From Thecamonas trahens ATCC 50062 (Eukaryota; Protista; Apusomonadida), in assembly GCF_000142905.1 (NCBI RefSeq), contig NW_013657677.1:1-64000 (forward strand): 64,000 nucleotides of DNA. The letters are read 5' to 3'. Position 1 is the stretch's first letter. Every line of letters begins with the position of its first letter. Made by a program: the position numbers and the translations under genes. This document shows positions 912-56,416 of this stretch, one piece after another. Below the pieces are notes generated by a model. The model did not search any database. It worked only from the letters and a program-made list of their open reading frames with translations, and was not told the origin of the DNA.

Positions 912-995
912 ATGCGCGTTTCGCTGACTTCGGTCGGGCTCTCGCTCCTCGCCCTAATGCTTGTTCTTTCGGTGTTCACCCCCCAGGTGGAGGCC
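912..995 (+). other. Signal peptide of the giant protein
   Basis: Basic N-region (MR), hydrophobic core [15 protein letters not shown] and a V-E-A cleavage motif, followed by GKKKKKG. Confidence 0.85.
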
Positions 996-3900
996 GGCAA
1001 GAAGAAGAAAAAGGGCTCGTCGTCGGCGTCGCAGCCAGGCTCGTGCACCACATGCCCTGCGCTCCCTGGCTCGACGTCGAATGACTACCCTACTGTGCCG
1101 ACGGCCGAGTACGTCGAGCACCTCAAATCGCTCTTCCCTGAGCGGTCGTCTCCGGACCCTGCGCTCATTGCGCCGGGCACAGACCCCAACCTCTACCTTA
1201 CCTCGGCTGGTACGGTCTCGATCACGTTCCTCCACGAGGGCGCTGGGTACCACAACCAGCTGGGGTACTACCTGTTCGACTCTGCGACGCCGGCCAACAT
1301 TGTGCCGGGCTCAGAGCGGCTTGTCTGGGCCGACGCCTCGATGCACAAGTGCATCCAGGTAGGGACCAAGACGGTGCTGAACAACGGCAACCCGTTTCCG
1401 GCGGGCACGCGCCTCGGCTTTTTCCTCGTCGCCGACGGCCACTGCACCACCGGCGGCAAGGCCACTTTCTACACCCACGACCACCTCAACCCGGACGGCA
1501 AACGCCACATCGGCATTGTGACCAACCGGGCCGGGACGTTCTCGTCGTCGACCACCTACACCGTCGGCTTTGAGGATCTGGTCAACCTTGGTGATCGCGA
1601 CTACAACGACCTCATGTTCTACATCACCACGACGGCTACCGTCGACGAGTCGAACCTGCCGGTCGAGTGCTCGCCGGACTGTGTGCACGGGACGTGCAAC
1701 TACGAGACCGGCGTGTGCGAGTGTGAGCCCGGTTTCTCGGGCACAACGTGCGAGGTCAAGGGCTGCGTTGACGAGCCATGCGCCGCCGGCGCCGCCTGCT
1801 CGGCGGTGACTGGCCGCTGCGAGTGCGTCAACGGCAAGTACGGCCCCGCGTGCGACCAGACCGACAAGTTCTTCTCGTGCTCGTACTCGGACGACCCCAA
1901 CTCATCTGGGTCGTACAAGTACCCTGTTTGTCACGCCACCAACTCGCTCACTAATCCCTACAATCTGCTCCGGCTGCCCAAGTCGGGCTACCTCAACCAC
2001 CTTACCAACAAGGCCCACAATGGCAAGCGCTTCCCGGACATCCAGCCGTTCCAGCTCGGCCGGGACTGCTTTGTCTACGACTGCGAGTGCAACCGCATCG
2101 CAAAGAGTCAGCTGAAGCTCGGCTCGCTCGCTTACCACACCTGGAACAATGTGCCCGGCAACAACGTGGCGGACCTCACTGCGCTCGCCACCTTCCCGGC
2201 CTCGCCCGACGCCGCTTCGTCTCTTTCTTCCTTTGACATCCCGCGCTCGGGCTCGTCGTTTGGCGGCAAGCTTGCCGGCTACCTCGTTCCCAAGCGCTCC
2301 GGCACCTACACCTTTTACATCTCGACCGACGACGCCGGTGAGCTCTACCTCTCGCCGTCGCCGCTCGCCCAGGACGCGGTCCTCATCGCATCCAACCCAG
2401 GCTGGACCTCGGCCAACCAGTGGAACCGCTACGCTTCGCAAAAGTCGGCTGCGGTCTCTCTGGTTGCCGGCAAGGCATACTACATCGAGTCGCGCTTCAA
2501 GCAGGGCTACGGCGGTGTCTCGCACCGGGTCGCCTGGACTGGGCCCGGCTTTAGGTCCATCACCGTCATTTCTGGGGCGTACCTTGCCCCGCTTGTGGTC
2601 GGCGAGGAGAACTACCCCATGGCCCCGTGCTCCGGCCACGGCTCGTGCACCGAGGCTTCGGACGACGGCCACGCCATGTGCGCTTGCGAGCCGGGCTTCA
2701 ACGGCGAGGCCTGTACCGAGATCGGCCCTATCGACTCGTGCCCGGCCTGCCTCAACGGCGGCGAGTGCAAGAACAACGCGTGCGAGTGCCCGCCGGGCTT
2801 CTCGGGCGACAGTTGCGAGTGCGACACGGCGTGCACCGGCAACTCGGGCTGCTCTGGCCACGGCGAGTGCAACTGCGACGGCTCGTGCACCTGTGAGCCC
2901 GGCTGGTCCGGCGCCGACTGCGCTTGCGCAACCTCGACCGACGCTTGCTCCACTTCGCCCCGCGGTGCCATCACCTTTGAACGCTGGAACAACGTCGGCT
3001 CATCCCGCTCGGTCTACGCCCTCCTCCGCAACTCGCGGTACCCGGACTCGCCCGACTTTACGGGCACGCTCTCGCTCTTTGAAGTCCCGCACAACGTTGG
3101 TAACTACTATGGCGCCCGCGTCATTGGCTACCTCCACCCCCGACCTCGGGCAAGTACGTCTTCCGCATCGCCGGTAACGACGGTCATGCGCTGTACCTCT
3201 CCTCAGATGCCAGCGATGTCAACCTTGCCCTTCTCGCTGGCAACTGGCGCTACACGCCGCGCCGCAACTACGAGGCAAGGTCGTCGTCGACCTCGCGATC
3301 GGTCAACCTTGTTGCCGGCCGTACGTACAGGATCATGGCGCTGCTCAAGGAGAGCACCGGCTCGGACCACCTCTCGGTCCAGTGGACCCACCCGCTGCTC
3401 GACGGTGAGTATGAGATCATTCCTGGCGCGTACCTCTCGCCCGACTCGAACGACGCCGCGCCCGGCGCCGCCATCTGCTCCGGTCGTGGCTCGTGCTCGT
3501 GCGGGATTTGCGCGTGTACCGGCGGCTACACCGGCGAACACTGCGAGTGCGCCCCGTGCGCGCCTGGGTCGTTCAACCCGTCGACACAGGTGTGTGACTG
3601 CGGCGAGATCAAGTGCAAGCCCGGGTTTACCGGGCCCGACTGCGGCTGCGCCTCCTGCGAAGATGTGACGTGCCAGTACGACAACCAGTTCTGCCAGTGC
3701 GGGACGTGCGCGTGCCTGCCCGGCTACTCGGGCCCGGACTGCTCGTGCGCCTCGTGCGACGACGTCGAGTTTGATCCGGCAACCGCGACCTGCTCGTGCG
3801 GCGAGGTCAGTTGCATCAACGGCTACTACGGCGACGACTGCTCCTGCCCGCCGTGCTCGTCGGTCACCTGTGACGCCGGCTTTACCTGCGACACCTCGTC

Positions 3901-6900
3901 GTGCTCGCAATGTGTGTGTGCATCGGCCATCGACGCCTGTGGTGTGTGCGGCGGCGACGGCTCGTCGTGCTCGGACGTCAACCGGTGCGCCTCGTTTGTT
4001 GACTGCGCCCAGTGCTCCGAAATCGCGTCGTGCGGCTGGTGCCCCGAGCTCAACAAGTGTCTCTTCACCGGCGCAGGCACCCGCCCCTCGGACGTGGTCT
4101 GCTCCGACTGCCCCAACGAGTGCCAGGTCGGTACCTGCGCGCCACGCAATGCCCCGCCCACCTGCACCGACTCGACCTTTGTCATCGCCGAGGACAATGT
4201 CCTCTCCGGCGCGCTCCTCGCCTCGGACCGCGACGGCGATGCCCTGACCCTCACGCTTACGACGCCGCCGTCCTCGGGCACCGTCGTCATCGCGCCCTCG
4301 GGCACGACGTTCACCTACACCCCGGCGCTCAACTTTAACGGCGTCGTCACTTTTGAGTACACCGTCTCGGATGGGACAGCGACGGCGCTCGACGGCGCCT
4401 GCACGGCTACCATCACCGTCGACCCGGTCAACGACCCGCCGATTGCTGTCTCGCCGTCTCCGTGCCTCGCCGGCGCTGAGGACTTTGCCATCACCGGCAC
4501 TCTCACGGCCTCGGACCCCGACCTCGTGTGCGCCGGCGGTTCGTACGCCCTCGGCGACTCGATCACCATCACGGGCACTGTCCACGACATGCGGTCGATC
4601 CACCCCGACTTTGAGGGCGCTATCGCCTTTGAGCGGAACATCGTCAAGTCGCTCCTCGGCGCTGACAAGAAGCCGGTCTACGGCAACCATCCCGACGGGA
4701 CCAAGACAACCAAGTCCAAGGCCTTTTTCGACATGTGGTTCAACGACCACGACGAGTACAACATGGCCGGCCCCATCTCGATCACCCTCAGCAACGACAA
4801 CTCGGGCTCGGCGCGCAAGTTTGGCTTCTGTGACACCTCGTTCTTCCCCATCGACGGCGCCATGCTTGGCAACGAGGGCAACAAGCACAACTACCACTTT
4901 TGCGCCGAGTGGCACCTCCAGTTCCAGCACACCGGCGACGCCGACTCGGTCTTCAAGTTCCGCGGCGACGACGACGTCTGGGTCTTTGTCAACAACCGCC
5001 TCGCCATCGACCTCGGTGGCGTCCACGGCGCTCGTTCGGCCTCGTTTGACCTCAACGAGATCGCCGACGAGTACGGCCTCGAGGTTGGCGGCGTCTACGA
5101 CTTTGACTTTTCTTCTGCGAGCGTCACAAGTCGGCCTCGCAGCTTTGCATCCAGAACACCTTCCCCATTGTTGACTGTGCCCTCGCCTACCGCATCGTCT
5201 CGCCGCCGTCGCACGGTACCGTCACCGTCGCCGGCAACTCATTCACCTACGTCCCCGACGCCAACTTTGCCGGCGAGGACTCGTTTACCTACGTCGCCTC
5301 GGACGGCTCGCTCGACTCGAACATTGCTCGCGTCTGCCTCAACGTCCAGGGCTCGGCCGACCCGCCAACTGCCTACGACCAGGTCTTTACCCTCCAGGAG
5401 AACGCTGTCCTCGACAATCACGCTCTGCTTGCCACCGACCCGGACGGCGCTGCCGACGCGCTCACCTACGAGCTGGTCGACCTGCCGGCCCACGGTGACG
5501 TGACGGCGCTCAACGCCGCCACCGGTGCTATTGTCTACAAGCCTGACCTCGACTACTTTGGCAAGGACTCGTTCACCTGGCGTGTGACCGACTCGACCGG
5601 TCTCGTCTCGCGGCTCGGCACCGCCTCGCTCAACATCATCGGCGTGCCGAACCACGTTCCGCGCGCCCGTGACGCCATCCACACCATCCGCGAGGACACT
5701 GTCCTCCGCGCCACCATGTATGGCTTTGACTCGGATGCCGGTGACCAGTTGTACTTTGACGTTGTCGAGCTCCCAACCCGCGGCAAGCTCGCGTATGACG
5801 GCCTCAAGGGCACCTTTACGTACACACCCAAGGCCAATGACGACACCTCGGACGCCTTTGTCTACACCGTCTCGGACGGCAAGGCCACGTCGAACCGTGC
5901 CACCGTCGAGATCGTGCTCTCTGCCGTCAACGACGCCCCGGTTCCAGCGCCGCTGGCCTTTTCCACCAAGCAGAACACTGCGTACTCGGGCACGCTCTCT
6001 GCACGCGACGTCGACGTTCCGCTCGACGACCTCACCTTTTCGCTGGCGGCTTCGCCGCGGTCGGGCTCGGTCTCGATCGATCCGTCCGGCGACTTTGTTT
6101 ACACGCCGCGGACTGGCTTCTCGGGCCGCGACGCGTTTACCTTTAACGTCTACGACGGCTTTGCCAACTCGGCCTCGCCCGGTCGGGTCACCATCTCGGT
6201 CGTCGACGTCAACGACCCGCCGACGGCCTCAGGCCTCGCCGCCGACACCAAAGAGAACATCCCGGTCTCGTTTGCGCTGCAGTGCGGCGACCCCGATGTC
6301 GGCGACACCGTAACCGGCCGCCTCGTCTCGTCACCGCCGTCCGGCTCGACCGCCACCCTTCGTAGCGGCGGCCTCTCGGTCCGGTACGTGCCCAAGGCCG
6401 GCTTTGTCGGCACCGACAACTTTGAGTACGAGTGCATCGATGCTGCTGGTGCCACCTCGGCGTCGGCACCGATCAAGGTCATTGTGGCAAACGTCAACCA
6501 CGTGCCGACCACGTCGAACGCCGCGTTCTCGGTTCTGGAGAACGCGCCTGTTGCTACCTTTGCTCTCGAGGCTGCCGACGTCGACGTCGGCGAGTCGCTC
6601 ACCTTCCGCCTCGCCCCGTCGACTCCGAACGGCCCGCGCAACGCCAAATCGTTTGCCCTCGACGCCACCGCCGGCACCTTTACGTACGCCCCGCGGACCG
6701 ACTACTTTGGCACCGACTCGTTCTCGTTTGTTGTCACCGACTCGACTGGTCTCACCTCGCGGACTGCCGGCCGTGTGACCATCACCGTCGTCCCACCGGC
6801 CAACCACCTCCCGCGGACTGCGCCGGCCACAGGCACCACCGCCGAGGATACTGAGCTCGTGCTCACTCTTGTCGGCACCGACCAGGACGCCGACGACACC

Positions 6901-9900
6901 CTCGTCTTTTCGATCGTCCGCGAGCCAGTCCATGCCGCCGCGGTCTCGCTCGACAAGGCCAGTGGCCGTTTGTACTACCTCCCGTCACCCGGCTTTGCCG
7001 GCGACGACTCGCTCGCCTACACCGTCACCGACTCGGCGTCGGCGTCGGCAACACCTGCCACCGTTACCATCACGGTGAGCCCGGTCAACGACCCGCCGGT
7101 TGTCGCCGACTCGCGCGTCGAGACCGCCGAGGACACCCCGGTCTCGGCGGCGCTCTCGGGCTCGGACGAAGACTCGGCGGCGCTTACCTTTTCGATCCTC
7201 GCGCAGCCGACCCATGGTGCCGTCGTCCTTGACTCGGCCGCCACTGGCGCGTTCACCTACACCCCAAGTGCGCAGTACTATGGTCCGGACTCGTTCACCT
7301 TTACCGTGGTCGACAGCGACGGCGCCCGCGCGCTTGCACCGGCCAAGGTCTACATCGCCATCACCGCCGCCAACGACCCGCCAGTCGCCATCGACGGCTC
7401 TCTGGAGTGTGCCGAAAACTCGCCTGGCTGCTCTTACACTATGGCTGTCGAGGACGTCGACTCAAAGGTTGTCTCGTGCGTTGTGACCTCGCGCCCGGCC
7501 AACGGCCAGCTCCTCGTCAAGTACGATCCAGCGCTCTTCCGCGCCTCGCGTGACGAGGACATTGCCGCTTTCACTTCAGCACCCAAGGCCGGCTCCGCCA
7601 AGGCCTCCAAGGGCTCCAAGGCCTCCAAGGGCTCCAAGGCCTCCAAGGGCTCCAAGGCCAAGACGGGCTCCAAGGGCTCGGGCTCGCGCGCCAAAAACTC
7701 GGCGGCCTCCAAGGCCAAGTTCTCGTCGCGCAAAAACTCAAAGCGGGCGGGCGACCAGGCCCCGATCTGCCCGACCAACCTCGCATCGATGACCGACGCG
7801 CAAATTCTGGCTTACTTTGCTGACAAGGGCTCGCGCAAGGGTAACTCGGCCGGCTCGTCGTCCAAGAACTCGCGCCAGGCCTCGTACTCGTCGTCCAACT
7901 CGGCGCCAATCCAGTGCAGCAACCCGCCTCAGGCGCACAAGGTCTACGTCTGCCACGCCACGTCGTCGACCAAGAACCCGTACGTCCGGCTCTCGGTCGC
8001 GCGCTCGTCTCTCGAGGCGGGTCACGTCATTGGCGAGTCCCATTCGGGCTCGGGCAACGTCGACCTCCTTCCTGGTGGCGACTCGGGTCTCGACTGCAAC
8101 TGTAATGTTGTTGACTCGCCCAAGGCCAAGTCCTCGGAAAAGGCCAAGTCGAAGCTCAAGGCCAGCAAGGCGGCCAAGGCTGCGCTGCTGGCCTGCCGTG
8201 CCGCCGCGCTCCCGACCCCGACCACGGTCGCGCCGCGGTGCGCGCTCCCTTCGCTCATCTCGAACCGGTTCATCTGCATCGGCACCAACTCGGCGTCGAA
8301 CCCTTACACCAAGGTTGAGGTCTCGATCGACGAGCGCAACGAGCTCCTCGTCGGTTCCGGTGCTGGCTCCGACAAGGGCTCCAACAAGGGCTCCAAGAAG
8401 AGCTCCAAGTCGAAGAAGCCCAAGGGCTCTGGCTCGAAGAAGTCATCACGCGACCGCGACGCCGACGAGGTCGACGCCTCCAAAAAGGCCAAGCGGTCGT
8501 CGGACAAGACCAAGTCCGAGAAGGAAAACTCCAAGTGGTTCAACTCGAACGACAAGAGCTCCAAGCAGAAGAAGAGCGCCAAGTCCTCGGGCTCACGCTC
8601 GCGCAAGGCCAAGTCGAACAAGTCGAACAAGGTCTCATCGGCCAAGACTTCCGGTGAGAAGCGCAAGGCTCAGACTCCGCGGAGCACCCGGTACCCGCCG
8701 GTCCGCCCGGGCACGGCCGGCCTCGACTGCAACTGTAAGCCCATTGCCTGCACCGTCACTTATGTGCCGGACAGCGAGTTCTGCGGCTCTGACGCGTGGC
8801 AGTTTGTTGGCTCGGACGGCGCCGCGTCGTCGCCGTCGGCGGCGACTGTCTCGGTTTCAGTCCCGTGCCCGTCGAACCGGGCGCCGCGCGCACACTCGGC
8901 CTCGTTCTCTACCGCAGAAGACACGCCGCTCGCGGGCGCGGTCGCTTCGGCCACCGACAACGACGGTGATGCTCTCACCTTTGTGGTCGTCTCGCCGCCG
9001 CGCCACGCCGCCGTCTTTAACCTCGCCGCTGACGGCACCATCACCTACACACCGGCTGCCGACTACCACGGCGCCGACTCGTTCCTGTTCAAGGCCAACG
9101 ACGGCTCGGTCGACTCGTCGGTTGCCAAGATCTCACTCACCGTGACGCCGGTCAACGACCCGCCAGTGGCGGCCTCGAACGCGCTCTCCACGCTCGAGGA
9201 TACTCCGATCTCGTCGTCGCTCCGTGCCACCGACGCCGACGGCGACACGCCGCTGGTCTACACCATTGTCACGCCGCCGACCTCTGGTCGTGTCACCATG
9301 GGCTCGCGCCCCGGCGCTTTCACCTACACCCCGTCGGCCGACTACAACGGTGACGACTCGTTCACCTTTACTGCCTCGGACGGGAGTGCGGACTCGGGCA
9401 CCGCCACCGTTACCATCACAGTGGGCCCGGTCAACGACCCGCCCACCGCCGCCGACGCTACGGTCAACATCGACGAGCTCCCGCGAGTCGCGCATGCGCT
9501 CGCGCTCACCGCCGCTGACGTCGACGGCGATGCCCTCACTTTCACCGTTGTCTCGGGCCCGTCGTCTGGCGTCATCGCGTCCTTCGACGCCGCGTCCGGC
9601 ACCTTTGACTACACACCCAACGTGGACTTTTTCGGCAAGGACGCGATCCGGTTCCTGGTCACCGACGCCGACGGCGCGTCGTCGTCTCGCGCAACGCTCA
9701 CCGTCAACGTTGTTCCGCCGGACAACCACATTCCGCGCACCGCCGACGCCTCGTACACCATCGACGAGGACCAGGTGCTCGACGCCAAGCTTGTGGGCAC
9801 CGACCAGGACGCGTTTGATCGCGCCAAGCTCACCTTTGCCAAGACGAGCGGCCCGGCCTTTGCCGTTGTCGACTCGGCGACTGGAAAGCTCACCTTTACT

Positions 9901-39900: not shown

Positions 39901-42900
39901 GTCACCGTAGTCCCGGTCAACGACCCGCCGGTCGGTGCCCCGGCCGCCTTCCTCGTCTCCGAAGACGTCGTCCTCGCCGGGGAGGCCCTCTTCGCTGCCG
40001 ACATCGACGACGCCACCTCGAACCTTGTCTTCAACGTCGAGCGCGACGGTGTCCTCGGCGACGTGGACCTCGACGCCGCCTCAGGCCTCTTCTCCTACTA
40101 CCCGCTCCCGAATGCCAACGGCGGCGACTACTTTACCTACAAGGTCACCGACCCGTCCGGCGCTACCTCGCCCGCCTACCGCGTCAACGTCACCGTCGTC
40201 CCGGTCAACGACGTCCCGGTCGCCGACCCGGCCGTCGTCTCGGTTGCCGAGAACGCCGCCGTCGCCGCAGCAATCACCCTCACCGGCTCAGACGTCGACA
40301 TTGCCCGCGAGGGTGACGTCCTCACATTCTCGCTCACCGTCGTCCCGACCCACGGCAACATCACCCTCGACCCTGCCACCGGTGCCTTTACCTACCTGCC
40401 GCACGTCGACTACTTTGGTCCCGACACCGGGTACTTTGTCGTCACCGACGCCGCAGGCGCTGTCTCGGAGCCGGCCCGCATCCGCATCTTTGTCCGCCCG
40501 CCGCCGAACCACATTCCGCGCGTCGGCGACTATGCCTTTGCCCTCGACGAGGATACCCCGCTCACCCCGGTCTACCTCCTCGGCACCGACCAGGACACCG
40601 ACCAGTCGCTCACCTTTGAACTCGTCAACGTTCCGGAGCACGCCGCAAGCTACGCCCTCGACCCGGCCACCGGCCTCTTCTCCTACACTCCGGCGCTCAA
40701 CTACAACGGGCCCGATGCCGCTACCTACCGCGTTGTCGACTCGTTCTCGTCGTCGCCGGCTGCCTCGCGCGAGGGCTCCATCGTCTTTACCATCAACCCG
40801 GTCAACGACGCCCCGGTCGCGGCTCCGCTGGCCATCACCCTTCCCGAGGACTCGTCGCTCGTTGGCGAGCTTGACTGCTCCGACGTTGACCTTCCGGCCC
40901 AGGGCCTGAGCTACGCCCTCGCCGCCGCGCCCGGTGGCGCCGCTACCCGTGGAGCTGTTGTGCTCTCCGGCACTGACCCGTCGTTCAACTACACCTCGCC
41001 GCCCAACTTCGTCGGCTCGGACCTGTTCTACTGGTCCTGCGCCGACGACGGCACTGGCTCGCTGACTTCGAACGTCGCCCTCGTCTCTGTCACCATCACT
41101 CCGGTCAACGACGCTCCGGTCGCCGCCGACATCTCGGTCTCGGTCGACGAGCGCTCGCTGGAGGAGCCCGGCTCCGGGCCCTTCACCATTGCCCTCCTCT
41201 GCTCCGACATCGATTTGCCCGGCGACGTCCTCTCGTTTGCGCTCACCTCGGCCCCGACCCATGGCACACTCTCTGCTCTGGACTCGGCCGCAGGCACCGT
41301 CGACTACCTCTCGGACATCGACTACTTTGGCGCAGACTCGTTCACCTACACCTGCTTTGACGGCGCCGCCACCTCGAACACCGCCCGCGTCACCATCGCC
41401 GTCACCCCGCCGGACAACCATCCGCCGCGGTGCGCCGACGCTGCCTTTACCGTCGACGAGGACGGCTCGCTTGCTGTCAAGCTCGTCGCCACCGACCAGG
41501 ACGCCGACGACGCCGACAAGCTCACCTACACGCTGGTCGGCGAGCCGGCGTTCGCCGCCTCGGCCTCCCTCGGCTACACGTCGGGCGTCTTTGCCTACGC
41601 TCCGGTCGCCGATCACGACTCGACCTCCGAGTCGCTCGCCTACGTCGTCTCTGACGGCGACAAGTCCTCGCGCGCATGCGCCGTCACCGTCGCCTTCCGC
41701 CCGGTCAACGACGCCCCGGTGGCCTCGCCGGCTGCGTACACCACGCTCGAGGACATTCCGCTCGAGATCACCCTCGTCTGTGCCGACATCGACTCGGCCC
41801 AGTCGGAGCTCTCGTTCACTGTTGTCCAGGCACCGGCCTTTGGCTCGGTCACCCACGCCGCACCGGGCTCAGCAGCCCTAACCTACGCCCCGGCCGCCAA
41901 CTACAACGGTTCGGACGCCTTTGCGTTCACCTGCTCTGACGGTAACCTGACCTCCAACGTCGCGGCTATCTCGCTGAGCGTGACTCCGGTCAACGACGCC
42001 CCGGTCGCCGCAGACCTCGTCTTCTACGTCGACGAGAACTCGGTCGCCAACGCCTGCTCCTCTCGGCCTCAGACCTCGATATCGAGGCCGGCGAGCAGCA
42101 GTCGCTTCGTTTCACCATCGAGTCGACCGCGCGCCTTGGCTCGCTCGCCAACTTTAACCGTGACGCCGGCTCGCTCACCTACACCCCGAACGTCGACGTG
42201 TGGACCGTCAACAACTCCCTCCCAGACTCGTTCACCTACTCTGTCGCCGACTCGGCCGGCGGTATCTCCAACGTCGCCACCGTCACCGTCCACATTGTCC
42301 CGCCGACCAACCACATCCCGCGCTCGGCGCCGGCCACCCGGACCCTGTCTGAGGATACTACCGTCACCATTCCGCTCGTCGGAACCGACCAGGACGTCGC
42401 CGACCTGCCGGCGCTGGTCTTCTCAGTCGTTGACGCCCCGTCGCACTCGGATGGCTCGTTCGCTGTCGACCCCGCCACAGGCGTCGCCACCTACACCCCG
42501 GCCCTCAACTACCACGGCGCCGACACCTTTACCTATCGCGTCAGCGATGGCAAGGACTTCTCGGCCTCGTCGGTTGTCGCGCTCACCATCACGCCCGTCA
42601 ACGACCCGCCGCTCGCCCTCCCGGCCACCTTTACCGGCCCCGAGGATGCGCCCCTCCTGGGTTTCTTCACCGGCTCGGACATCGAAGGCTCGCCGCTCTC
42701 GTTCTCGCTCGTCGGCTCGGGCCCGGCCCTTGGATCGCTCGTCCGCGACGGTGCAGACTTTGTCTACCAGCCACCGGCAGACTTCTTTGGCAATGTCACC
42801 TTTGACGTTCTCGCCTTTGACGGCGCTGCCTACTCGCTGGCCCCGGCTACCATCACCCTCGTCATCACCCCGGTCAACGACGCTCCGCTCGCCCTCAACA

Positions 42901-45900
42901 CCACCCTCTCCGTTCCGGAGAACGCCGGGCCGACCACCGTCCAGCTTCCGGCGTCCGACGTCGACGTCCCGGTCCAGGCCCTTATCGCCTCGCTCGAGTC
43001 GGCGCCGGCTCTCGGCAACCTGACCAACTTTGATCCGCTGGCTCGCACCGTCGACTTTACCCGACCCGCGACGTGTGGACCGACCCGGGTCTCACCGACT
43101 CGTTCACCTTTGCCGTCAACGACGGTCTTGCCAGCTCGGTCACCCTCGGTACTGTCACTATCACCATCGTCCCGCCGGCCAACCACGTTCCGATCGCCTA
43201 TGACGCTGCCTTTACCATTGCCGAAGACGGCGCTGTCCCGGCAGCCGCACGCCTCTCAGCCTCGGACCTTGACATCGACCGCTCACGCGCGAACTTTGCC
43301 CAGGTCCTCGCCTTTGAGGTCGTCACGCCCCGGAGCACGCCGAGCTCTTCCGTCTCGACGCCGATGGCGCCTTTGCCTACGCGCCCGAGGACAACTACAA
43401 CTCGGTCGACTCGTTCGCCTTCCGCGTCTTTGACGGCGTCGACTACTCGAACATCGCCACCGTCGTCATCACCATCACCCCGGTCAACGACGCCCCGGTC
43501 GCCGAGCCCGACGCAGTCGCCACTCCCGAGGACACCCCGCTCGTCGAGCAGTTTGTCGCTTCGGACGTTGAGGACGACCCGCTCACCTATGTCGTTGTCT
43601 CGCCGCCGGCCCACGGCTCTGTCGCCGTCGTCAACGGCTCGTTCTACCTCTACACCCGGCCGCAGACTACAACGGGCCGGACACCTTTGCCTTTGAGGTC
43701 CTCGACACTGCAGGCGCCGTCTCGGCCCCTGCCACCATCGACATCACCGTCTCGCCGGTCAACGACCCGCCGCTCGCCCACGACGTTGCCTTCTCCATTC
43801 CCGAGGACGCCGACTTTGACAATGTCCAGCTCCTCGGCTCGGACGTCGACGCTGGCGCCGTCCTCACCTACTTTGTGCTCACCACGCCCAACCACGGCTC
43901 CCTCGGTGAGCTCAATCGCGACACCGGTGTCGTCGGCTACAAGCCGGCCCGCGAGTACTTTGGATCGGACTCGTTCACCTTCCGTGTCTCGGACGGCGAG
44001 GCCTTCTCCGAGCCCGCCACCGTCACCATTACTGTCGTTCCGCCGGCCAACCACCGCCCAAGTCGGCTCCGGCCAACGCTACCACCCTCGAGGACACCCC
44101 GGTCACCCTCCAGCTCTTTGGCTACGACGTCGACGTCGGCCGCGTCGACCACGACGACGTTCTCACTTGGCACGTCGTGACGCAGCCGGCCCACGCCGCG
44201 AACCTCGCCCTTGACCCGGACACCGGCGTTCTCACCTACACCCCGGTCCTCAACTACAACGGGCCCGACTTCCTCGACTACGTCGTCAACGACAACTTTG
44301 ACCGCCTCGACAACGGCCAGGCCGCCACCGGTGCCCTCTCGCCCGTCGCTCGCGTCTACTTTGACGTTTCTCCCGTCAACGACGCCCCGGTCGCTCGTCC
44401 CTCGACGGAAACCATTCCCGAGGACTCGGTACTCTCCGCCGCCTTTGACGTCGCTGACGTCGAGTCAGGCCGTGCCGGTCTCGCCATCACCGTCACCAGC
44501 TCGCCCTCTGCTGGCGGCCTCGTCTCGGTCGAAGGTACCGGCTACACCTACACTCCGGCTCGCGACTTTAACGGCGCAGAGACATTCTCATTCACCGCCA
44601 CCGACCCGGAGGGTGCCGTCTCCAACGTGGCCACCGTCACCGTCACCGTCACCCCGGTCAACGACGCACCAGTCCCAGTCGACGACGCCTACTCGGTTGC
44701 AGAGTACAACCTCGAGGACGTGCTCAACTCGGCTCCGGCGCCGCGCCTCCGCATCGTCCTCAACTCGACCGATGTCGACGGCCCGCTCCCGGTCTACGCC
44801 CTTGCCTCGTCCGTCGCGCACGGCACCCTCTCCGAGTTTGTGCCGTCGACCGGCGCACTGGTCTACACCCGAACGTCGACTACTTTGGCCCCGACGCCTT
44901 CACCTTTACCGTCTCGGACACCAAGACCCAGTCGGTCATCGTCGGCACCATTGACATCACCGTCGTCCCGCCGGCCAACCACCGCCCGCGCGCCGCGCCG
45001 CGCTCGCTCGTCACCGCAGAGGACACTCCCATCGCCGGTGAGTTCCTCTTTGCCGCCGACCAGGACGCCGCCGACTCGCTCTCCTTTGTCGTCGTCTCCC
45101 AGGCTGCTCACGGCATCGCCGCAATCGATGGCTCCACCGGCGAGCTGACCTACACTCCGAACCCGCACTTCCACGGCGATGACGTCGTCGTCTACGCCGT
45201 CTCGGACGGTGCCCTCACCTCGCGCCTGGCCACCATCGCCATCGCAGTCACGCCCGTCAACGACGCCCCGACCTGCGCTGCCGCCGCCAACGCCACCGCT
45301 GAAGACACACCGCTCAATGACGTGCTTGTCACCAGCGACGTCGACGGTGACTGCGCTGTCGGCTCGGCCGCGCCGGTTCCGGACACCACCATCACCGTCA
45401 CCGCCATCGTCCGTGACTTTACCGACTCGCATCCCGACTTTGAGGCTGCCATCGGCACCGACCGCGGCATCGTCCAGTCGACCCTCGGCCCCGACCGCAA
45501 GCCAGTCTACCAGAACCTGCTGCCGACAACCCCGACTACCACCTCGGCTGCCTCGTTTGCTCAGTGGTTCAACGATGTCGATGGCGTCAACGTCGCCATC
45601 CCGGTCGACATCCCGCTCTCCAACGCAGGTGCCGCAGACCCGGCCGTCTTCTCCTACTGCTCGCCGGCCTTCTTCCCCATCGACGGCGCAGGCTTTGGCA
45701 ACGAGGGCCGCGCACACAACTTCCACTACACCCTCGAGCTCCACCTCGAGTTTACCTACGTCGACTCGCTCGCCACCGTCTTCACCTTTAACGGTGACGA
45801 CGACCTGTGGGTCTTTGTCAACGGTGAGCTCGTCGTCGACCTCGGCGGCGTCCATGGCGCCCAGACCGGCTCGTTCGATCTTGCCACCGTCGCCGCCGAC

Positions 45901-48900
45901 CTCGGCATGGCTCCGGGCGGCACCTACCCGATCGACATCTTCTTTGCCGAGCGCCACACCACCCAGTCGCGCTTCTGTATCGAGCGCATGTTTGCCGCCG
46001 CCCCGTGCGTCCGCGCCCTCACTCTCGTCGACCCGCCGTCGCACGGCGCCGTCCAGATCGTCGGCTCGTCGTACACCTACGTGCCCGACCCCGACTACAA
46101 CGGCCCCGACTTCTTCACCTACACCGCGACAGACGGCTCGCTCTCCTGCAACAGGACCCGTGTCGACATCGAGGTGACCCCGGTCAACGACGCCCCGGTC
46201 GCCGCGCCCTGCGCCTTTGCCGTCCTCGAGAACTCGGTCAACAACCCAGTCTCGGTCTCGGGCACCGACATCGACGGCGACTCTCTCGCCTTTAGTGTCA
46301 CCCTCGACACCGCCCACGGCTCGCTCGCCATCGACGCCTCGGGCGCCGGCGTCTACACCCCGCACGTCGACTACTTTGGTGACGACGCCTTTACCTTTGT
46401 CGCCTCGGACGGCGCCCTCAACTCGGCCCCGGTCACCTGCGCCATCACCGTCGTTGCCCCTGACAACCACATCCCGCGCACCGCGCCCGAGGCCCTCACC
46501 ATGGCCGAGGACACCGTCCTCACCGCACAGCTCGTCGGCACCGACCAGGACATCGACCCTGGTCGCGTCGGCTACGCTCAGGTCCTCTCGTTCTCGCTTG
46601 TCGAGAGCCCGGCCTTTGGCGCCGCCATCCTCGATCCGGCCACCGGCATTCTCACCTACACCCCGGCCCTCAACTACAACGGGCCCGACGCCCTTGTGTA
46701 CATTGTCAACGACGGCCTCGACAACTCACTCCCGTCGCTCGTCAACATTACCGTCTCTCCGGTCAACGATGTCCCGCTCGCCCTGCCCGAGACCCACACC
46801 CTTCTCGAGGACTCGGCCCTGATCCTCGCTGACCTCCTCGGCACCGACGTCGAGTCGGACCCGCTGGCCCTCGCCTACACCCTGGTGAGCCAGCCGGCCT
46901 CCGCGACTACACCCGTCGTTGTCTCGAGCGTCAACAAGTTTACCTACTCGCCGCTCGCCAACTTTAACGGCGTCGACTCGATGACCTTTACCGTCACCGA
47001 CCCGACGGCGCGGTCTCGTCCGAGGCCGTCGTCGCCTTTGTCGTCCTCGCCGTCAACGACGCGCCTGTGGCCCACCCGGGTGCCTTTGCCACCGACGAGG
47101 TCTCTGCCGAAGCGCCCAACGTGCCGCCGACGCCGTTCACCCTTGTCGGCACCGACATCGACTCGCCGGCCCTCACCTACCGCATCGTCACGCCGCCGGC
47201 CATGGGCGTCATCGTCTCACTTGACGCCGCCACCGGCGAGGGCCTGTTCATGCCCAACGTTGACGTGTGGGGCAACGACACCTTTACCTTTGAGGTCTCG
47301 GACGGCGAGCTCGTCTCGGTCCCGGCAACCATCACCGTCTCGATCATTCCGCCGGACAACCACATCCCGCGCGTCAAGCCGTTTGCCTTTGCCACGCCCG
47401 AGGACACCGCCTTTGGCACCGTTCTTAACGGCACAGACCTCGACGCCGACGCGCTTGAGTTCTTTGTCGTCTCTGGTCCGGCACACGGCACCGTCTTTGT
47501 CGACGCCGCCACCGGCGGCCTCGCCTACACCCCGGCCGCAAACTACAACGGGCCGGACGCTCTGCAGTACCGCGCCTACGACGGCAAGGACTTTTCGCTC
47601 TCCAAGGACGTGGCCATCACCGTGATTCCGGTCAACGACGCGCCGACCGCGCTCTCGTTTGCCCTCACCACGGCCGAAGACACCCCGATCGACGCCCTCC
47701 TCCGCGGCGCCGACATCGAGGGCTCGCCGCTGACCTTTACCCACTCGCCGGCGGGCGCCGCTCCGGGCTCGGCCTTTGCCGCCTCGGGCGACGTTGTCAC
47801 CTACACGCCGCCGGCCAACTTTAACGGCGTCACCTCGTTCACCTACACCGCCAACGACGGCGAGCTGACCTCGGCCCCGGCCACCGTCACCGTCACCGTC
47901 ACGCCCGTCAACGACGCGCCGGTCGCCAACGACGTCGCCGCCGCCGCCACCGAGCACAACGCGCTCGGTGCCGCCCCGGCGCCTGTGCCTATCGTCCTCG
48001 ACGCTTCCGACATTGACGGCGACGCGCTGACCTACGAGCTCAACACGCCGCTGGTCGTCGTCTCATCGCCGGCCCCGGCTCCGATCGCCACCTCGCCGGG
48101 CACGCTCTCGGCCTTCAACCCGGCTACAGGAACCGTCAGCTACGCGCCGGCCGTCGACTTCTGGGGCGTCGTCTCGTTCACCTACGTCGTCACCGACGGC
48201 GCGGCCTACTCGAACGTTGCCACCGTGACCATCACCGTCGCCCCGGTTCCGCATCCGCCGCGCGGCGCAGACGCCGCCTTTACCATGGATGAGGACTCGA
48301 CCCTTATCCGCGTCCTTGTCGGCACCGACCAGGACGCCGGCTCGACCCTCACCTTTGCCATCGAGTCCCCTCCGTCCAACGCTGCTGCTTTCTCACTTGA
48401 CGCGGCCACCGGCACGCTCTCGTACACGCCAGCCGCAAACTACAACGGCGCCGACTCGCTGACGTACTCGGTCTCTGACGCCACCCTCACCTCGGCCCAC
48501 CACACCGTGTCCATCACCATCACCCCGGTCAACGACGCGCCCGTCGCTGTCTCCGCAGTCGAGATCACCCCCGAGGACACCCTGCTCTCGGCGTCGTCGC
48601 TCTGCAGCGACGTCGACAACACCGCGGCCGAGCTGACCTTTACAGTCATCTCGCCTGCTGCCCATGGCACCGTCTCGACCTACACCGGCGCCTCCTACAC
48701 CTACTCGCCGGCGACCAACTACAACGGAACCGACGCGTTCACCTTTGTGTGCTCGGACGGCAGCCTCGACTCGAACGTCGCCACCACGGCCATCACCGTG
48801 AGCCCGGTCAACGACGTCCCGGTCGCCCTCCCGTGCACCTTTACCATCGACGAGAACGACCCGCCGACCGTCTTTGCCCTCTCGGCAACCGACGTAGAGG

Positions 48901-51616
48901 ACGCGTTCCTCACCTACTCGCTCGGCGCCGTCGCGAGCCCGTCCAAGGGCTCGGTCGCGGTCGCGGACCCGCTGGCCGGCACCGTCATGTACGCTGTCAA
49001 CAGCTGGGTGTGGGGCAACGACACGTTCTCGTTTGTGGCTACCGACTCGTTCGGCGCCGTCTCCAACGAGGTCGTCTGTACCGTCATCATCGTCCCGCCG
49101 GCGAACCACATCCCGTGGTCGCGCAACGACACCTTTACCGTTGCCGAGGACACCTCGGCCGACTTCTCGCTCTACGGCTTTGACCTCGATGTCGACGACG
49201 TGCTCACCTGGTCGCTTGTCGATGTCAACGGCGAGCTGTACACCTCCACGAGTCCGTTTGCAGGCCCGGTCCTCGGCCTCGAGGGCGAGGACTCCGAGGG
49301 CGCGCCGCTCGACGGCGCCGAGTCGGAGGCCGGCGCCGCCGAGCGCGCGCTGGGCGACTTTACCCTCGACCCGGACACAGGCATCCTCACCTTCCAGGCC
49401 CCGGATCACTTCCACGGCACCGTCCACCTGTTCTACCTCGTCGACGACGGGCTCGCCTCGTCGGTCGTCTCGCGTATCACCATCGTGGTCACGTCAGTCC
49501 TCGACTCGCCGGTCGCCCACGCCGCCTTTATCACCACTCCCGAGGATACCCCGGTCTCGTCGGTTGTCTCGGGCTTTGACCCGGACACCCTGCTGGACGG
49601 CGACGTGCTAACCTTTACCCTCTCGACAGGCGTTACCGTTTCGGGCGCCTCGCTCACCTTTGACGGCGTCTCGGGTGCGTACACGTACACGCCAGCGCCC
49701 GACTACGTCGGCGGCGACTCGTTTGCCTTTTACGTCGACGACGGCACGGTGACCCCGCCGTCGTCGCCGCGGACGGTCTCCATTACCGTGACGCCGGTCA
49801 ACGACCCGCCGGTGGTGGCCTCGGCCAACTTTACCACCGCCGAGGACGCCGCCTTTGGCGCCACCTACACGGTCACCGACATCGACTCACCGCTGGGCGC
49901 GCTCTCGTGCGCGGTCAACACCCTTGTGCCCTCGCTCGGCAGCGTCGTCTCGACAGGCACCTCGTTCACCTACACGCCGTTTGCCAACGTTGTCGGCGAC
50001 GACGTCTTCCGCTTTGTCTGCACCGACGGCGCCCTGACCTCGAACACCGGCACCATCCGCATCGAGATCACGCCCGTCAACGACCCGCCCACCGCCCTCC
50101 CGTCGGCCTTTGCCGTCAACGAGAACGACGGTCCGGTGCCGTTTACGCTCCTCGGTGCCGACATTGACGTCACCAACCCGCAGGCCCTCGCCGACGAGCT
50201 CCGCTTCGAGCTCACCTCGCTGCCGACCTCGGGTGTCCTCACCCTCCACACCGGCGAGGCTGCCCTCACCGGCGTCCAGTACTCCACGGGCGCCTTCCGC
50301 TACCAGCCAAATGTCGACGTGTGGGGCGCCGACTCGTTTGACTTCCGCGTCTATGACTCGGAGGACGCTGTCTCGCTCTCGTCGGCCCAGGTCAACGTCA
50401 CCATTGTGCCGCCGGACAACCACATCCCGCGCGCCGCCGATGCCGCCGTCTCGGTCGCCGAGTCGGCCACAGTCCTCATCCCGCTTGTCGGAACCGACCA
50501 GGATGTCGCCGACATCCTCACCTTTGCTGTCGTCTCCACGCCGGCGCTCACCGTCGACTACGCGCTCAACGCCACCACTGGCGTCTTCCGCTACACGGCC
50601 TCGAGCACAAACGGCGTCGACACCTTTACATACGTGGTGAGCGACGGTACCGCGGTCTCGGCCGAGGCCACCGTCACCGTCACCATCACCTCGGCCAACG
50701 ATCCGCCGTCCGTCGCCGACATCGCCGTCTCGGTCGCCGAGGAGGCCACCGTCTCGTCTGTCCTCTCGTACTCGGACCCGGACACCGGCGACGTCGTCAC
50801 GCTGCGACTCAACTCCAACCCGGCCTATGCCGCCGCCTTCTCGTTCGACCCGGCCACCAACGTGTTTGAGTACACGCCGGTCGCCGACTTTAACGGCGTT
50901 GACTCGTTCACCTACATCGCCAATGACGGCACCGTCGACTCGAACGTCGGAACCGTGACCATCTCGGTGACTCCGGTCAACGACGTGCCCATCGCCTTCT
51001 CGGCCTCGTACGAGACCCCGTTCTCCACCGCCATCGCCTTTAACCTTAACGGTACCGACGTCGAAACCGACTGGGCCAACCTGGTCTTTGCCGTCACCTC
51101 CCTCCCCTCGCGCCGCGAGGGCACCCTCACCGGCGGCGCCATCGACAACTTCCTCGGCGTGCCGGGCATCACCGACCTTCACTTTCAGCCGTCGTCGCGG
51201 TTCTCGGGCGAGCTCACCCAGCCCATCGAGTTCACCGTGACCGACGAGGCTGGCGCTGTCTCTTCCGTCGGCGTCATCCAGATCAACGTCGCCGCCCCCG
51301 ACCGCACAGTCATTGGCGGCCTCACCACCGGCGTGACCACTCCGGCCGGCGACGAGGGCTCCCCATCTGGCCCTTCATCGTCGCCGCCGTCACCGTCCTC
51401 ATCGTCATCCCGCTCGCCTTCTTCCTCTACAAGTGGTGCCATCCGGCCAAGCTCAACATGCTCTTCACCGAGGACGAGCTGGACGAGGGCACCTTTATCG
51501 AGAAGTCCGTCCTCTTCAAGAACAAGTACGAGCGCGTCATCAACCCCATGCATCGCTTCGAAGGAGGCGAGGCTGCGGGCATGGACGACGACGCCGCAGG
51601 CATGGGTGGCTCGTAA
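912..51616 (+). CDS. Giant type I transmembrane adhesin/receptor, about 16,906 aa after repairing 16 single-base frameshifts
   Basis: ATG at 912 opens the signal peptide [28 protein letters not shown]. ORFs 807/3335/5500/13824/15677/16411/19473/36628/42198/43073/43875/44177/45322/47067 plus three short unlisted frame segments join with domain motifs running through every junction. Junction runs: 3137-3141, 5108-5111, 13801-13804, 15662-15665, 16407-16409, 19333-19335, 36099-36101, 36488-36491, 42053-42054, 43060-43062, 43328-43331, 43655-43657, 44057-44059, 44868-44870, 47001-47003, 51361-51364. (50705+16)/3=16907 codons, ending at TAA 51614-51616. Confidence 0.88.
1130..1635 (+). other. DUF4114-like beta-sandwich domain of the kind found in bacterial surface proteins
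   Basis: Motifs [31 protein letters not shown] and [19 protein letters not shown]. The last matches the GFED...DxDYNDL signature recalled for DUF4114. Confidence 0.7.
1668..1860 (+). other. Two EGF-like domains
   Basis: [28 protein letters not shown] and [25 protein letters not shown]. Confidence 0.8.
2121..2585 (+). other. PA14 domain 1 (Ca2+/glycan-binding type)
   Basis: [32 protein letters not shown]...[21 protein letters not shown]...VAWTGPG, including the PA14 DD motif. Confidence 0.85.
2628..2930 (+). other. Three EGF-like repeats
   Basis: CSGHGSC...[12 protein letters not shown]; [23 protein letters not shown]; [24 protein letters not shown]. Confidence 0.8.
2964..3440 (+). other. 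PA14 domain 2, spanning frameshift 1
   Basis: Repaired reading [32 protein letters not shown]...[28 protein letters not shown] aligns by eye with PA14 domain 1. Confidence 0.8.
3475..4140 (+). other. Integrin-beta-like Cys-rich EGF repeats, a [13 protein letters not shown] motif and a PSI domain
   Basis: [25 protein letters not shown], then further CxCG-xxx-CxxGY/FxGxDCxC units, [14 protein letters not shown], and PSI-like [25 protein letters not shown]. Confidence 0.7.
4529..5178 (+). other. Fibro-slime (PA14-related, Dictyostelium psi-factor-like) domain 1, inserted inside a cadherin-like domain
   Basis: HPDFE...FFDMWFND...FFPIDG...[16 protein letters not shown]...[23 protein letters not shown]...FFCERH (last motif after repairing frameshift 2). 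Confidence 0.85.
7600..7659 (+). repeat. Perfect 18-bp tandem repeat (AAGGCCTCCAAGGGCTCC, 3.3 copies) encoding (KASKGS)n
   Basis: Read directly from the sequence. Confidence 0.9.
36742..37398 (+). other. Fibro-slime domain 2 (inserted)
   Basis: [11 protein letters not shown]...FDQWYND...[25 protein letters not shown]...[23 protein letters not shown]...FFAERHT. Confidence 0.88.
45352..46008 (+). other. Fibro-slime domain 3 (inserted)
   Basis: [11 protein letters not shown]...FAQWFND...[25 protein letters not shown]...[23 protein letters not shown]...FFAERHT. Confidence 0.88.
51365..51616 (+). other. Transmembrane helix (51365-51430) and 61-aa cytoplasmic tail of the giant protein
   Basis: In the frame after the C4 run at 51361-51364: [83 protein letters not shown]. 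Confidence 0.88.
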
Positions 51617-55084: not shown

Positions 55085-55567
55085 GACTACTTGTTTGCGT
55101 CGAGTGAAGACGAGTATGTACGGGGGGGGTCTGGGGGGAGGCTGTTCTTCCCCCCTGTGGCTCTTGTCTCTGCGTCCACTGATCAGCCGCGTTTGCCAGA
55201 TCGCACCAAAAGGTCGTGAAACGGACAAAAAAGGTCGCAAAGTGCGCACACTTCACAAAGATAATAGCAAACGTCCCATGGAACACTCTCTATGAGACTG
55301 GGGGGGGGATCGGGATCGCGTGCGATGGATACGCAAGAACGATGTGTGATGTGGGTGTGGAGCTAGAGATGGCGTAGGTACACGATGTGTGTCTAATGCG
55401 GTCGTACCACGCTGGAGGTAGGCTCTTGAGCTGGTATGTGTGTTGATCAGGTGTTGGTAAGGAACTCTACAGCAGGTGTGTACTCTGACTGGGATCAGGC
55501 AACAAAGATAGGGAGGGATAGGGATATGGATAGGAGTGAGGGGAGGGCCAGGGTGGAGAGCCACGGC

Positions 55568-56416
55568 TCAAACACGCGAGTCGGCAACATGTGGCATGGG
55601 CGGAACATACTCGCCCTTGACGATGAGAACGTCTGCGCCGGCATTGACCGCGACGTACTTGGCGGTCGAGCCGAGCGCCTTGCGACGGAAGCCAACGAGC
55701 GCCCGCGGGGTGCGGGCAAGAACAATTAGGTCGATGCCGTGGCCCTCGGCCGCGAGGCAGATGAACTCGCCGAGGTGATACGACCGCCCGACAAGTCCGA
55801 TGACATTGTCGATGCCGGCAGAGCGCGCCGCGTCGACGTAGTACGCCACCACTCGCTTAGCCCGATCAAGCGCCACCACATCCTGCCCAGCCCGTGACAG
55901 TTCGTTTGGCACCACCGAAATCACATGCAACATGTCGCTCTCGGCATCCATCAGCCCAGCCGCAGCCACAAACGCCGCGTAGCAGCCGACAGACTCATCC
56001 ACGGGAATCATGAGCTTCCGCTGCTGTCCGCCTGCTGCTCGCCCGCCTCCACCCATTGACGCCGCAATGATCATCGAACCCGGCGAGCTGTTGATCGAGG
56101 AGTTGGTTGAGCGGCGGGAGACCACCGCATCACCTCCATCGTCGTCCTGCTCCGATCCAGGAGGACCAAGGGCAGCTTCTGCAGCGGCGGCCTCCCTCTC
56201 TGCCCGAGCAGCGCGCGATGCAGCAGCAGCATCAGCAGCCTCTCCGGCTGCCCGAAAGGCATCCAATGAGAGATCGTCATCAAAGCGAAGAACAATGACA
56301 TCGTCAAGCGCAGCATCAGGCACGGCATCGATGAGTGCTGCCAGTCCGGCCGTAGCAGGGTCGTCTGCTCCTGTCACCGCAGCCCAAGCCGACGAAAGAA
56401 ACGACTTGACAGCCAT
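55568..56416 (-). CDS. Universal stress protein (UspA-domain) protein, 282 aa
   Basis: KLMIPVDES...DMLHVISV...ICLAAEGHGIDLIVLA...LGSTAKYVAVNAGADVLIVK fits the Usp fold pattern, preceded by an N-terminal extension. Confidence 0.85.
   Translation of the reverse strand: MAVKSFLSSAWAAVTGADDPATAGLAALIDAVPDAALDDVIVLRFDDDLSLDAFRAAGEAADAAAASRAARAEREAAAAEAALGPPGSEQDDDGGDAVVSRRSTNSSINSSPGSMIIAASMGGGGRAAGGQQRKLMIPVDESVGCYAAFVAAAGLMDAESDMLHVISVVPNELSRAGQDVVALDRAKRVVAYYVDAARSAGIDNVIGLVGRSYHLGEFICLAAEGHGIDLIVLARTPRALVGFRRKALGSTAKYVAVNAGADVLIVKGEYVPPMPHVADSRV

Follow-up and report, generated by a model that had tools for sequence, protein, structure and literature searches.

The window analysed here is a stretch of 64,000 nucleotides at the start of contig 3 (NW_013657677.1) in the genome assembly of the protist Thecamonas trahens ATCC 50062, and positions 912–51616 of its + strand very probably form one intact, intron-free gene for an acidic type-I membrane giant with a stalk of bacterial adhesin type. 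An earlier note on this DNA had claimed a single intronless gene for about 16,900 amino acids (aa) with type-I topology, and the claim held. A script-built read-through of 912–51616, in which an X stands at each frame break, comes to 16,906 residues with 16 X and 0 stops, begins with a signal peptide and ends with a transmembrane helix and a tail. The codon sum, (50,705 + 16)/3 = 16,907 including the stop, matches this length. The encoded protein has a mass of ~1.75 MDa and an isoelectric point (pI) of ~4.1, with 12% D+E and 4% K+R. In a hydropathy scan of the whole read-through, just two segments were of membrane grade, the signal peptide and the helix at 51365–51430. The X-bridged read-through was used for counts and for local hidden Markov model (HMM) work, and the database searches were done piecewise. 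The gene and its two ends are laid out as follows.

912–51616, + strand: whole gene, a single exon, from the ATG at 912 to the TAA at 51614–51616
912–995, + strand: signal peptide of 28 residues, then a Lys run (signal prediction and hydropathy)
51365–51430, + strand: transmembrane helix of 22 residues (transmembrane prediction and hydropathy scan)
51431–51616, + strand: cytoplasmic tail of 61 aa with INPMH inside and GMGG at the C-terminus, up to and including the TAA

Between 807 and 51616 the + strand carries a series of long open frames, each overlapping the next. Within the gene the frame changes 16 times, always by −1 (f3 to f2 to f1 to f3, and onwards), as expected from the loss of 16 single bases. 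A 113-position repeat HMM, built from the stalk copies in the gene's longest frame, gave 161 hits in the three + frames, and its coordinate continues over the frame changes with no intervening DNA. For instance, model positions 6–67 run in f3 to 15665 and are followed by positions 63–112 in f2 from 15650; positions 6–47 run to 19338, with 43–112 from 19323; and positions 7–52 run to 36496, with 48–112 from 36484. A like continuity is found at 43064/43058, 43345/43327, 43641/43653 and 44875/44863. Since the model coordinates are continuous and there is no DNA gap, there is no room for introns at the frame changes. Introns at these places are ruled out by the gap-free coordinates together with sequencing reads that add one base.

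These reads and contigs come from four public runs and were aligned to 41900–47100, the stretch that holds seven of the breaks. Run X1, of 2011, carries the same organism label as the window; its library type is not recorded, and its small contig total fits RNA too. Illumina sequencing produced runs X5 and X6, both registered as RNA libraries. Run X8 is an estuary metagenome that covers four of the seven sites and represents a near-identical environmental strain, distinct from the sequenced culture; as its contigs reach 190 kb, it appears to be DNA. An extra C is present behind 42052, 43059, 43327, 43654, 44056, 44867 and 47000, exactly the seven breaks of this stretch, and each covering run has it at full depth (7/7 breaks). 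All seven lie in C-runs of 2–4 bases. Because every covering run adds one C, the X8 DNA included, these seven breaks are under-calls of the assembly, and the earlier view that the frame breaks need polishing and not splicing is upheld at every break that the reads cover.

42053–47003, + strand: seven read-proven one-base (C) assembly gaps (reads of four runs)
3137–51364, + strand: nine further breaks at inferred places in homopolymers of 3–5 bases, namely C5 at 3137–3141, T4 at 5108–5111, A4 at 13801–13804, T4 at 15662–15665, A3 at 16408–16410, T3 at 19333–19335, G3 at 36099–36101, C4 at 36488–36491 and C4 at 51361–51364

At the nine inferred breaks the expected motif picks up in the next frame, as in YDFD/FFCERH, TGAF/SYSP and LTF/SVVSAPANG, where the slash marks the frame change. 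Relatives covering these nine places were sought in JGI metagenome contigs, and none was confirmed. We conclude that the 16 frameshifts are single bases dropped from homopolymer runs by the assembly, as is directly observed at seven of them. An unpolished assembly of long-read style thus splits a 50-kb open reading frame into 17 pieces, which a gene caller would list as many unrelated genes or pseudogenes. Run X1 also differs from the window by single bases at 43793, 44483, 45196, 46402, 46533, 46723 and 46873; the window may represent another strain or haplotype, or it may carry substitution errors.

The codon usage follows the read-through as well. The guanine + cytosine (GC) content of the third codon position, taken in phase, is 0.82–0.93 in every stalk insert and in the tail and 0.85 in the rest of the gene, against ~0.6 in all phases of the flanks. 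The in-phase values rule out the stalk inserts as retained introns. Contigs of 6–7 kb from the RNA libraries are colinear over 41900–47100, and none skips an intron-like stretch; the apparent joints in contigs of this region are secondary alignments of short pieces to sister repeats. On the − strand, long antisense open frames face the gene (for example 16249–19236, 11392–13689 and 20253–22094), the longest with 995 aa; they are taken to be by-products of GC-rich, stop-poor codon usage, not genes.

The greater part of the protein is the stalk.

4133–51299, + strand: stalk of ~147 tandem-95 (Big_9/Cadherin_4/Cadherin_5) domains (Pfam, NCBIfam and our own HMM)

The count of ~147 domains follows from 133 full and 20 partial HMM hits and agrees with the ~146 tandem domains claimed before. 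Summed Big_9 (PF17963) scores reach 1007.8 bits over 23 stretches, and 580–1105 bits over 17–29 stretches per long piece, at a cut-off of 23.6 bits; tand_rpt_95 (NF012211) scores 415 bits per 1000 aa at a cut-off of 90. In the whole genome, 139 of the 144 single-copy Big_9 matches over the cut-off fall in this gene. The other Big_9 loci (C51, C53, C47, C72 and C25) were considered as paralogues and rejected, being single weak domains in unrelated open reading frames. The stalk consensus has PVNDAP linkers and strongly conserved polar positions (N11 95%, E25 97%, D37 100%, D39 86%, D87 98%). A like acidic pattern binds Ca2+ in the linkers between repeats of bacterial adhesins (PMC7493085).

The copies have diverged to a mean identity of 37% and a maximum of 63% and, judged by their sequences, are old. 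Identity rises to 40–42% between copies at lags of 3, 6, 9 and 12 domains versus 34–37% at other lags, from which it follows that the stalk grew by three-domain units. Two further families match these repeats by summed scores. Ig_SibA gives a weak signal that adds up to 38.7 bits (cut-off 27), each stretch by itself falling short, and to 20.8 bits in the C-terminal piece; the classical cadherin repeat PF00028 reaches 28.2–30.6 bits only when summed, again with no single stretch passing. The protein differs from classical cadherins in this respect and in its tail, which matches no family where theirs binds catenin.

About nine stalk domains are interrupted by 42–400 residues that lie outside the repeat model, the model breaking off at positions ~40–65 and resuming after each insert. 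The inserts, three of which are fibro-slime/PA14 modules, occupy the following places.

4451–5176, + strand: fibro-slime/PA14 module 1, its host domain split at model positions 2–40 / 43–112; it holds break 2 (T4 at 5108–5111)
7513–8712, + strand: Lys/Ser-rich basic insert of 400 aa in a split domain, with two CH...NPY...GLDCxC mini-modules
13009–13396, + strand: split-domain insert
13938–14214, + strand: split-domain insert
35898–36227, + strand: split-domain insert
36676–37408, + strand: fibro-slime/PA14 module 2 in a split domain (TIGR02148, 104.7 bits)
45352–46018, + strand: fibro-slime/PA14 module 3, its host domain split at model positions 1–42 / 47–112
49224–49347, + strand: split-domain insert

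The fibro-slime model TIGR02148 scores 104.7, 100.0 and 74.6 bits on the three modules (cut-off 45) and PA14 (PF07691) scores 34.5–43 bits (cut-off 24). With the fibro-slime model and tandem-95/Big_9 both over their cut-offs, the bacterial-adhesin modules named in the earlier note are present. The modules carry GDDD at the core motif. The modules, module 3 among them, are 50–59% identical to stand-alone fibro-slime proteins, and those named by organism are of myxobacteria and cyanobacteria. At least one database protein, P0222, joins Big_9 to PA14 and covers 87% of a split module. AlphaFold, run on split module 3 with 40 sequences, predicted the fibro-slime core at a per-residue confidence (pLDDT) of 80–95. 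A Foldseek search with this core returned the PA14 sugar-binding domains of the Marinomonas primoryensis adhesin MpIBP, Candida Epa, yeast Flo and glycosidases, at probabilities of ~1 and modest TM-scores.

The insert at 7513–8712 has 14-residue Lys/Ser runs within the acidic stalk of pI 4.1, and an in-phase third-position GC of 0.87 marks this strongly basic segment as coding. An interaction with anionic surfaces is possible. Split-domain inserts, and in one case the head, also hold a recurrent Cys/His mini-module of ~50–60 aa. It follows the pattern [VIL]CH[AG]TSSxKNP[YW]xR..V ... GHVIG ... PDY[FW]PGTNGLDC[NE]C, and gave no Pfam family at E ≤ 1 and no usable match in the ESM Atlas. Its places are these.

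~1960–2110, + strand: Cys/His mini-module
7513–8712, + strand: two copies of the mini-module
13009–13398, + strand: Cys/His mini-module
18070–18252, + strand: Cys/His mini-module
27048–27305, + strand: Cys/His mini-module
35898–36229, + strand: Cys/His mini-module

The head, which takes up the first 1,074 residues, had been described as a lectin/EGF head. The domain matches agree with this, EGF_TEN falling just below its cut-off.

1395–1631, + strand: DUF4114 (55.4 bits, cut-off 27)
1668–1860, + strand: EGF-like repeats (EGF_2, Pfam match)
2112–2606, + strand: head PA14/GLEYA domain 1 (PA14 and GLEYA over Pfam cut-offs)
2628–2948, + strand: teneurin-type EGF array (EGF_TEN 63.4 bits, cut-off 65; EGF_Teneurin 46.2 bits, over its cut-off)
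2960–3460, + strand: head PA14 domain 2, spanning break 1 (C5 run at 3137–3141)
3476–4132, + strand: Cys-rich EGF-like array, which ends with an 11-residue motif and then a CGWC (PSI-like) motif

The first PA14/GLEYA domain carries the core motif TDDAG, in what should be the place of the Ca-binding Asp pair in the PA14 lectins of yeast and Marinomonas; the Ca2+-dependent sugar site of such lectins joins an adjacent Asp pair to a second loop. Compared by sequence with solved PA14 domains, the head PA14 matched 6qdi at 1.2e-6 and the Marinomonas adhesin lectin weakly. A search with the whole head returned just three weak partial matches, all to the PA14 part. The Cys-rich array was closest among PDB sequences to teneurin EGF (1.7e-7), with integrin I-EGF at 0.007–0.7, and the single-sequence AlphaFold model of this region, at a pLDDT of 40, is unusable. 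A 12-residue motif with a weak ADAMTS-5 match (E 0.1), followed by a PSI-knot-like CxxCxxxxxCGWCxxxxxC motif, was observed at 3940–4070; neither reaches the threshold of any family.

Among 1.84 billion cluster representatives the tail had one true relative, P0121, and a second, Calx-type match was judged spurious. P0121 is a fragment of 118 aa from the Tara Oceans metatranscriptome catalogue that is 58% identical to the tail and keeps its PLAFFL-KW-HP, IEKS, INPMH and C-terminal GMGG motifs. Its presence in a metatranscriptome with these motifs conserved indicates apparent transcription of a related protein in the sea and, as far as sequence comparison goes, constraint on the tail. No paralogue of the tail was found in the genome.

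The earlier note had likened repeats and the tail to those of integrin beta, and this part of it found no support in the family models. Integrin families gave no match at E ≤ 1 to the Cys-rich region or the tail, and the tail matched no family at all at that level, Integrin_b_cyt (PF08725) included. The same models find the genome's single bona fide integrin beta: genome-wide, Integrin_beta (PF00362; 143.8 bits) and Integrin_b_cyt (29.4 bits) met in only one gene, on contig C30.

C30, 55564–58371: integrin beta, an open frame of 1,117 aa, with the beta-I domain match at 55564–56313

The canonical tail of that integrin beta reads KIFIWKRDKQLWAKF...NPLY...NPIY; the tail of the giant protein has a single NPMH. 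In a single-pair BLASTP comparison the two tails aligned colinearly with 25% identity at E 0.046, which we regard as a hint and not as membership. Of the PSI domain that had also been named, the resemblance survives at the level of the CGWC motif, and the PSI families themselves have no match at E ≤ 1. The giant protein shares with integrin beta a type-I topology, Cys-rich EGF-like repeats beside CGWC and a tail of similar length, but it differs in having no beta-I/VWA domain and no Integrin_b_cyt, PSI_integrin or I-EGF match at E ≤ 1. A talin was also noted in an open frame of 3,197 aa around 245,000 on contig C43. Complex prediction for the tail with the F3 domain of this genome's talin gave a score of 0.00, which has no weight either way.

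A comparison with the Dictyostelium proteins SibA–E, described as "similar to integrin beta" (PMC10880500, citing Cornillon et al. 2006), leads to a similar result. Both are protist type-I adhesion proteins with bacterial-type Ig-like repeats, Cys-rich EGF-like repeats and a short tail. However, Pfam scans found no beta-I/VWA domain in any piece of the giant protein, which is therefore not of the Sib type; its tail has NPMH and no NPxY and is unrelated to theirs by detectable sequence. The Sib proteins have ~1,900 aa, so that the present protein is roughly nine times larger.

By analogy, the closest working counterparts are the giant fibrillar (RTX-type) adhesins of bacteria. Among these, the 1.5-MDa MpIBP consists of over 130 domains and includes a PA14 lectin (PMC5550230), and ligand-binding domains of RTX adhesins such as Aeromonas AhLap are recognised by their projection from companion split domains (PMC12077191). 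The common features are a megadalton size, a run of Ig-like extender domains of ~100 aa with acidic linker residues, a marine setting, PA14-type sugar-binding modules, and ligand modules that bud from split extender domains. In contrast to RTX adhesins, the giant protein is eukaryotic, is anchored by a C-terminal transmembrane helix and tail as against their N-terminal outer-membrane retention module, has EGF arrays in its head and carries its ligand modules along the shaft instead of clustered at one end. No RTX nonapeptide, HemolysinCabind or type I secretion family, such as would mark the C-terminal beta-roll and secretion signal of those adhesins, was found in Pfam scans of all protein pieces. 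The bacterial tandem-95, VCBS and "large repetitive" proteins share the stalk family (NF012211; Big_9 PF17963), whose Pfam cut-off each stalk copy passes, but the present protein is 2–5 times longer, eukaryotic and of type-I topology, with an EGF and DUF4114 head. Drosophila Dumpy and the mucin MUC16, membrane-tethered giant fibres of animals, are likewise single-pass surface proteins that exceed 14,000 aa and repeat a short domain many times. Their repeats, EGF/DPY and SEA/mucin, respectively, are unrelated to tandem-95, and the giant protein is that of a unicellular organism and has lectin modules.

The top stalk matches that are named by organism are all bacterial (28–43% identity, in proteins of 3,300–8,000 aa), and the ends of the best stalk match, P0001, look bacterial. 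The organism-named fibro-slime matches are likewise all bacterial. Because the stalk and the fibro-slime modules are of bacterial type, we infer that they probably came from bacteria long ago and were multiplied within the gene, on a head and an anchor of eukaryotic kind. The GC and third-position GC of the gene are native to the genome. No near-identical protein was found in the piecewise searches, whose length windows leave out an entry of 16.9 thousand aa, and literature searches returned no account of a protist protein of this kind. In short, the giant protein repeats the design of the giant fibrillar adhesins of bacteria in eukaryotic, membrane-anchored form.

Regarding the setting, the assembly comprises 28.7 Mb in 131 contigs with 66% GC, and GC is 0.61–0.70 over the whole window. 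The genes that follow downstream are ordinary eukaryotic ones; they encode a calcineurin-like metallophosphoesterase, a protein with a Usp domain, an LSM14/Scd6 protein and a ubiquitin hydrolase (UCH). Between 52040 and 52180, in the intergenic DNA after the gene, there are G-runs of 8–12 bases that are likely mis-sized in the assembly. The public runs in which the stretch was present are of one cultured organism and of estuary, marine, seawater and subsurface samples.

These features suggest how the protein would work. The conserved Asp, Glu and Asn positions and the PVNDAP linkers would take up Ca2+, by which the stalk would be stiffened in seawater to a filament roughly half a micrometre long; the earlier note had put its length at about 0.6 µm. 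The PA14-type modules, placed both at the tip and on the shaft, would bind glycans on the substrate, a biofilm or prey, as they do in RTX-type adhesins, and the conserved tail would couple the filament to a partner in the cytoplasm. Adhesion, stiffening by Ca2+, the length and a cytoplasmic coupling are what we infer from this architecture, and all four are well motivated.

Several points weigh against the reading of one intact gene for a working adhesin and are collected here. Reads cover 7 of the 16 breaks, and the other nine were placed by homopolymer and frame. The gene is colinear in contigs of libraries labelled as RNA, but in these DNA carry-over is possible, so that transcription of the gene is putative, and such contigs cannot show transcript ends. 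Calcium binding, glycan binding, length and surface exposure would follow from what is known of the families, the cytoplasmic partner of the tail is putative, and the proposed direction and age of the transfer from bacteria are tentative. In the model of the split module, the half-domains that flank the core have a pLDDT below 50, and the model leaves their geometry unconfirmed.

The 16 frame breaks of the assembly, nine of them outside the read-tested stretch, could be taken for real frameshifts and the gene for the decaying pseudogene of a once-giant adhesin. This is very improbable, as all seven tested breaks vanish in all covering runs, including the one with the same organism label, all 16 breaks have the same direction and lie in homopolymers, and the read-through is stop-free with third-position GC kept in phase throughout. 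It is hardly credible, too, that the DNA lacks these bases and that either insertional RNA editing puts them back or programmed frameshifting passes over the gaps. X5 and X6, the two RNA libraries, do show the extra C at all seven sites, and X1 could be RNA. However, the DNA of X8, although from an environmental strain, has it at full depth at all four sites that it covers, and the other breaks are spread over runs of A, T, G and C, as a sequencing artefact would give. A dead gene and recoding are left with a very small joint probability mainly because X8 has the bases in its DNA. Equally remote is a bacterial adhesin gene mis-joined into a eukaryotic contig. While the stalk and the fibro-slime modules match bacteria best, the protein has a eukaryote-style signal peptide, EGF arrays, a transmembrane helix and a tail, and lacks any bacterial signal for secretion or anchoring; in GC and third-position GC the gene resembles the flanking eukaryotic genes of the contig; and independent environmental contigs have the same sequence.

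Somewhat less improbable, but still unlikely, is that internal promoters, cleavage or ectodomain shedding give several shorter adhesins instead of one chain of 1.75 MDa. A full-length transcript or protein is yet to be seen, and the contigs are blind to RNA ends. On the other hand, the read-through contains neither a stop nor a further signal peptide or transmembrane segment in its interior, and the colinear RNA-library contigs of 6–7 kb show no skipped stretch in 41900–47100. Of the alternatives, a different role deserves the most serious attention, and we consider it a real if tentative possibility that the protein is a fibre of the cell coat or matrix, or a receptor for the phagocytic capture of prey or bacteria, and not a substrate adhesin for gliding. 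The architecture would suit any use of a long multivalent glycan-binding filament, and the Lys/Ser-rich insert and the Cys modules are without an assigned role, whereas the conserved cytoplasmic tail favours a signalling or cytoskeletal link over a passive coat.

One intact gene for a membrane-anchored giant thus remains our reading of the sequence. A bolder proposal, which we put forward as possible but doubtful, is that this bacterially derived filament of 1.75 MDa is a working adhesion receptor alongside the integrin–talin system, with a coupling of its own from the tail to the cell interior. If true, the organism, a free-living marine protist, would have a second, independently assembled system for cell-substrate adhesion or prey capture, and few known surface proteins of any unicellular eukaryote would match this one in size. 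The tail, with its conserved INPMH, its one environmental relative and no family, offers a handle for a new adaptor link. In summary, the design of bacterial megadalton adhesins, with a Ca-type extender rod and lectins on split domains, can sit on a eukaryotic type-I anchor, and the giant protein is a concrete candidate for the grip on surface or prey in a gliding or feeding protist.

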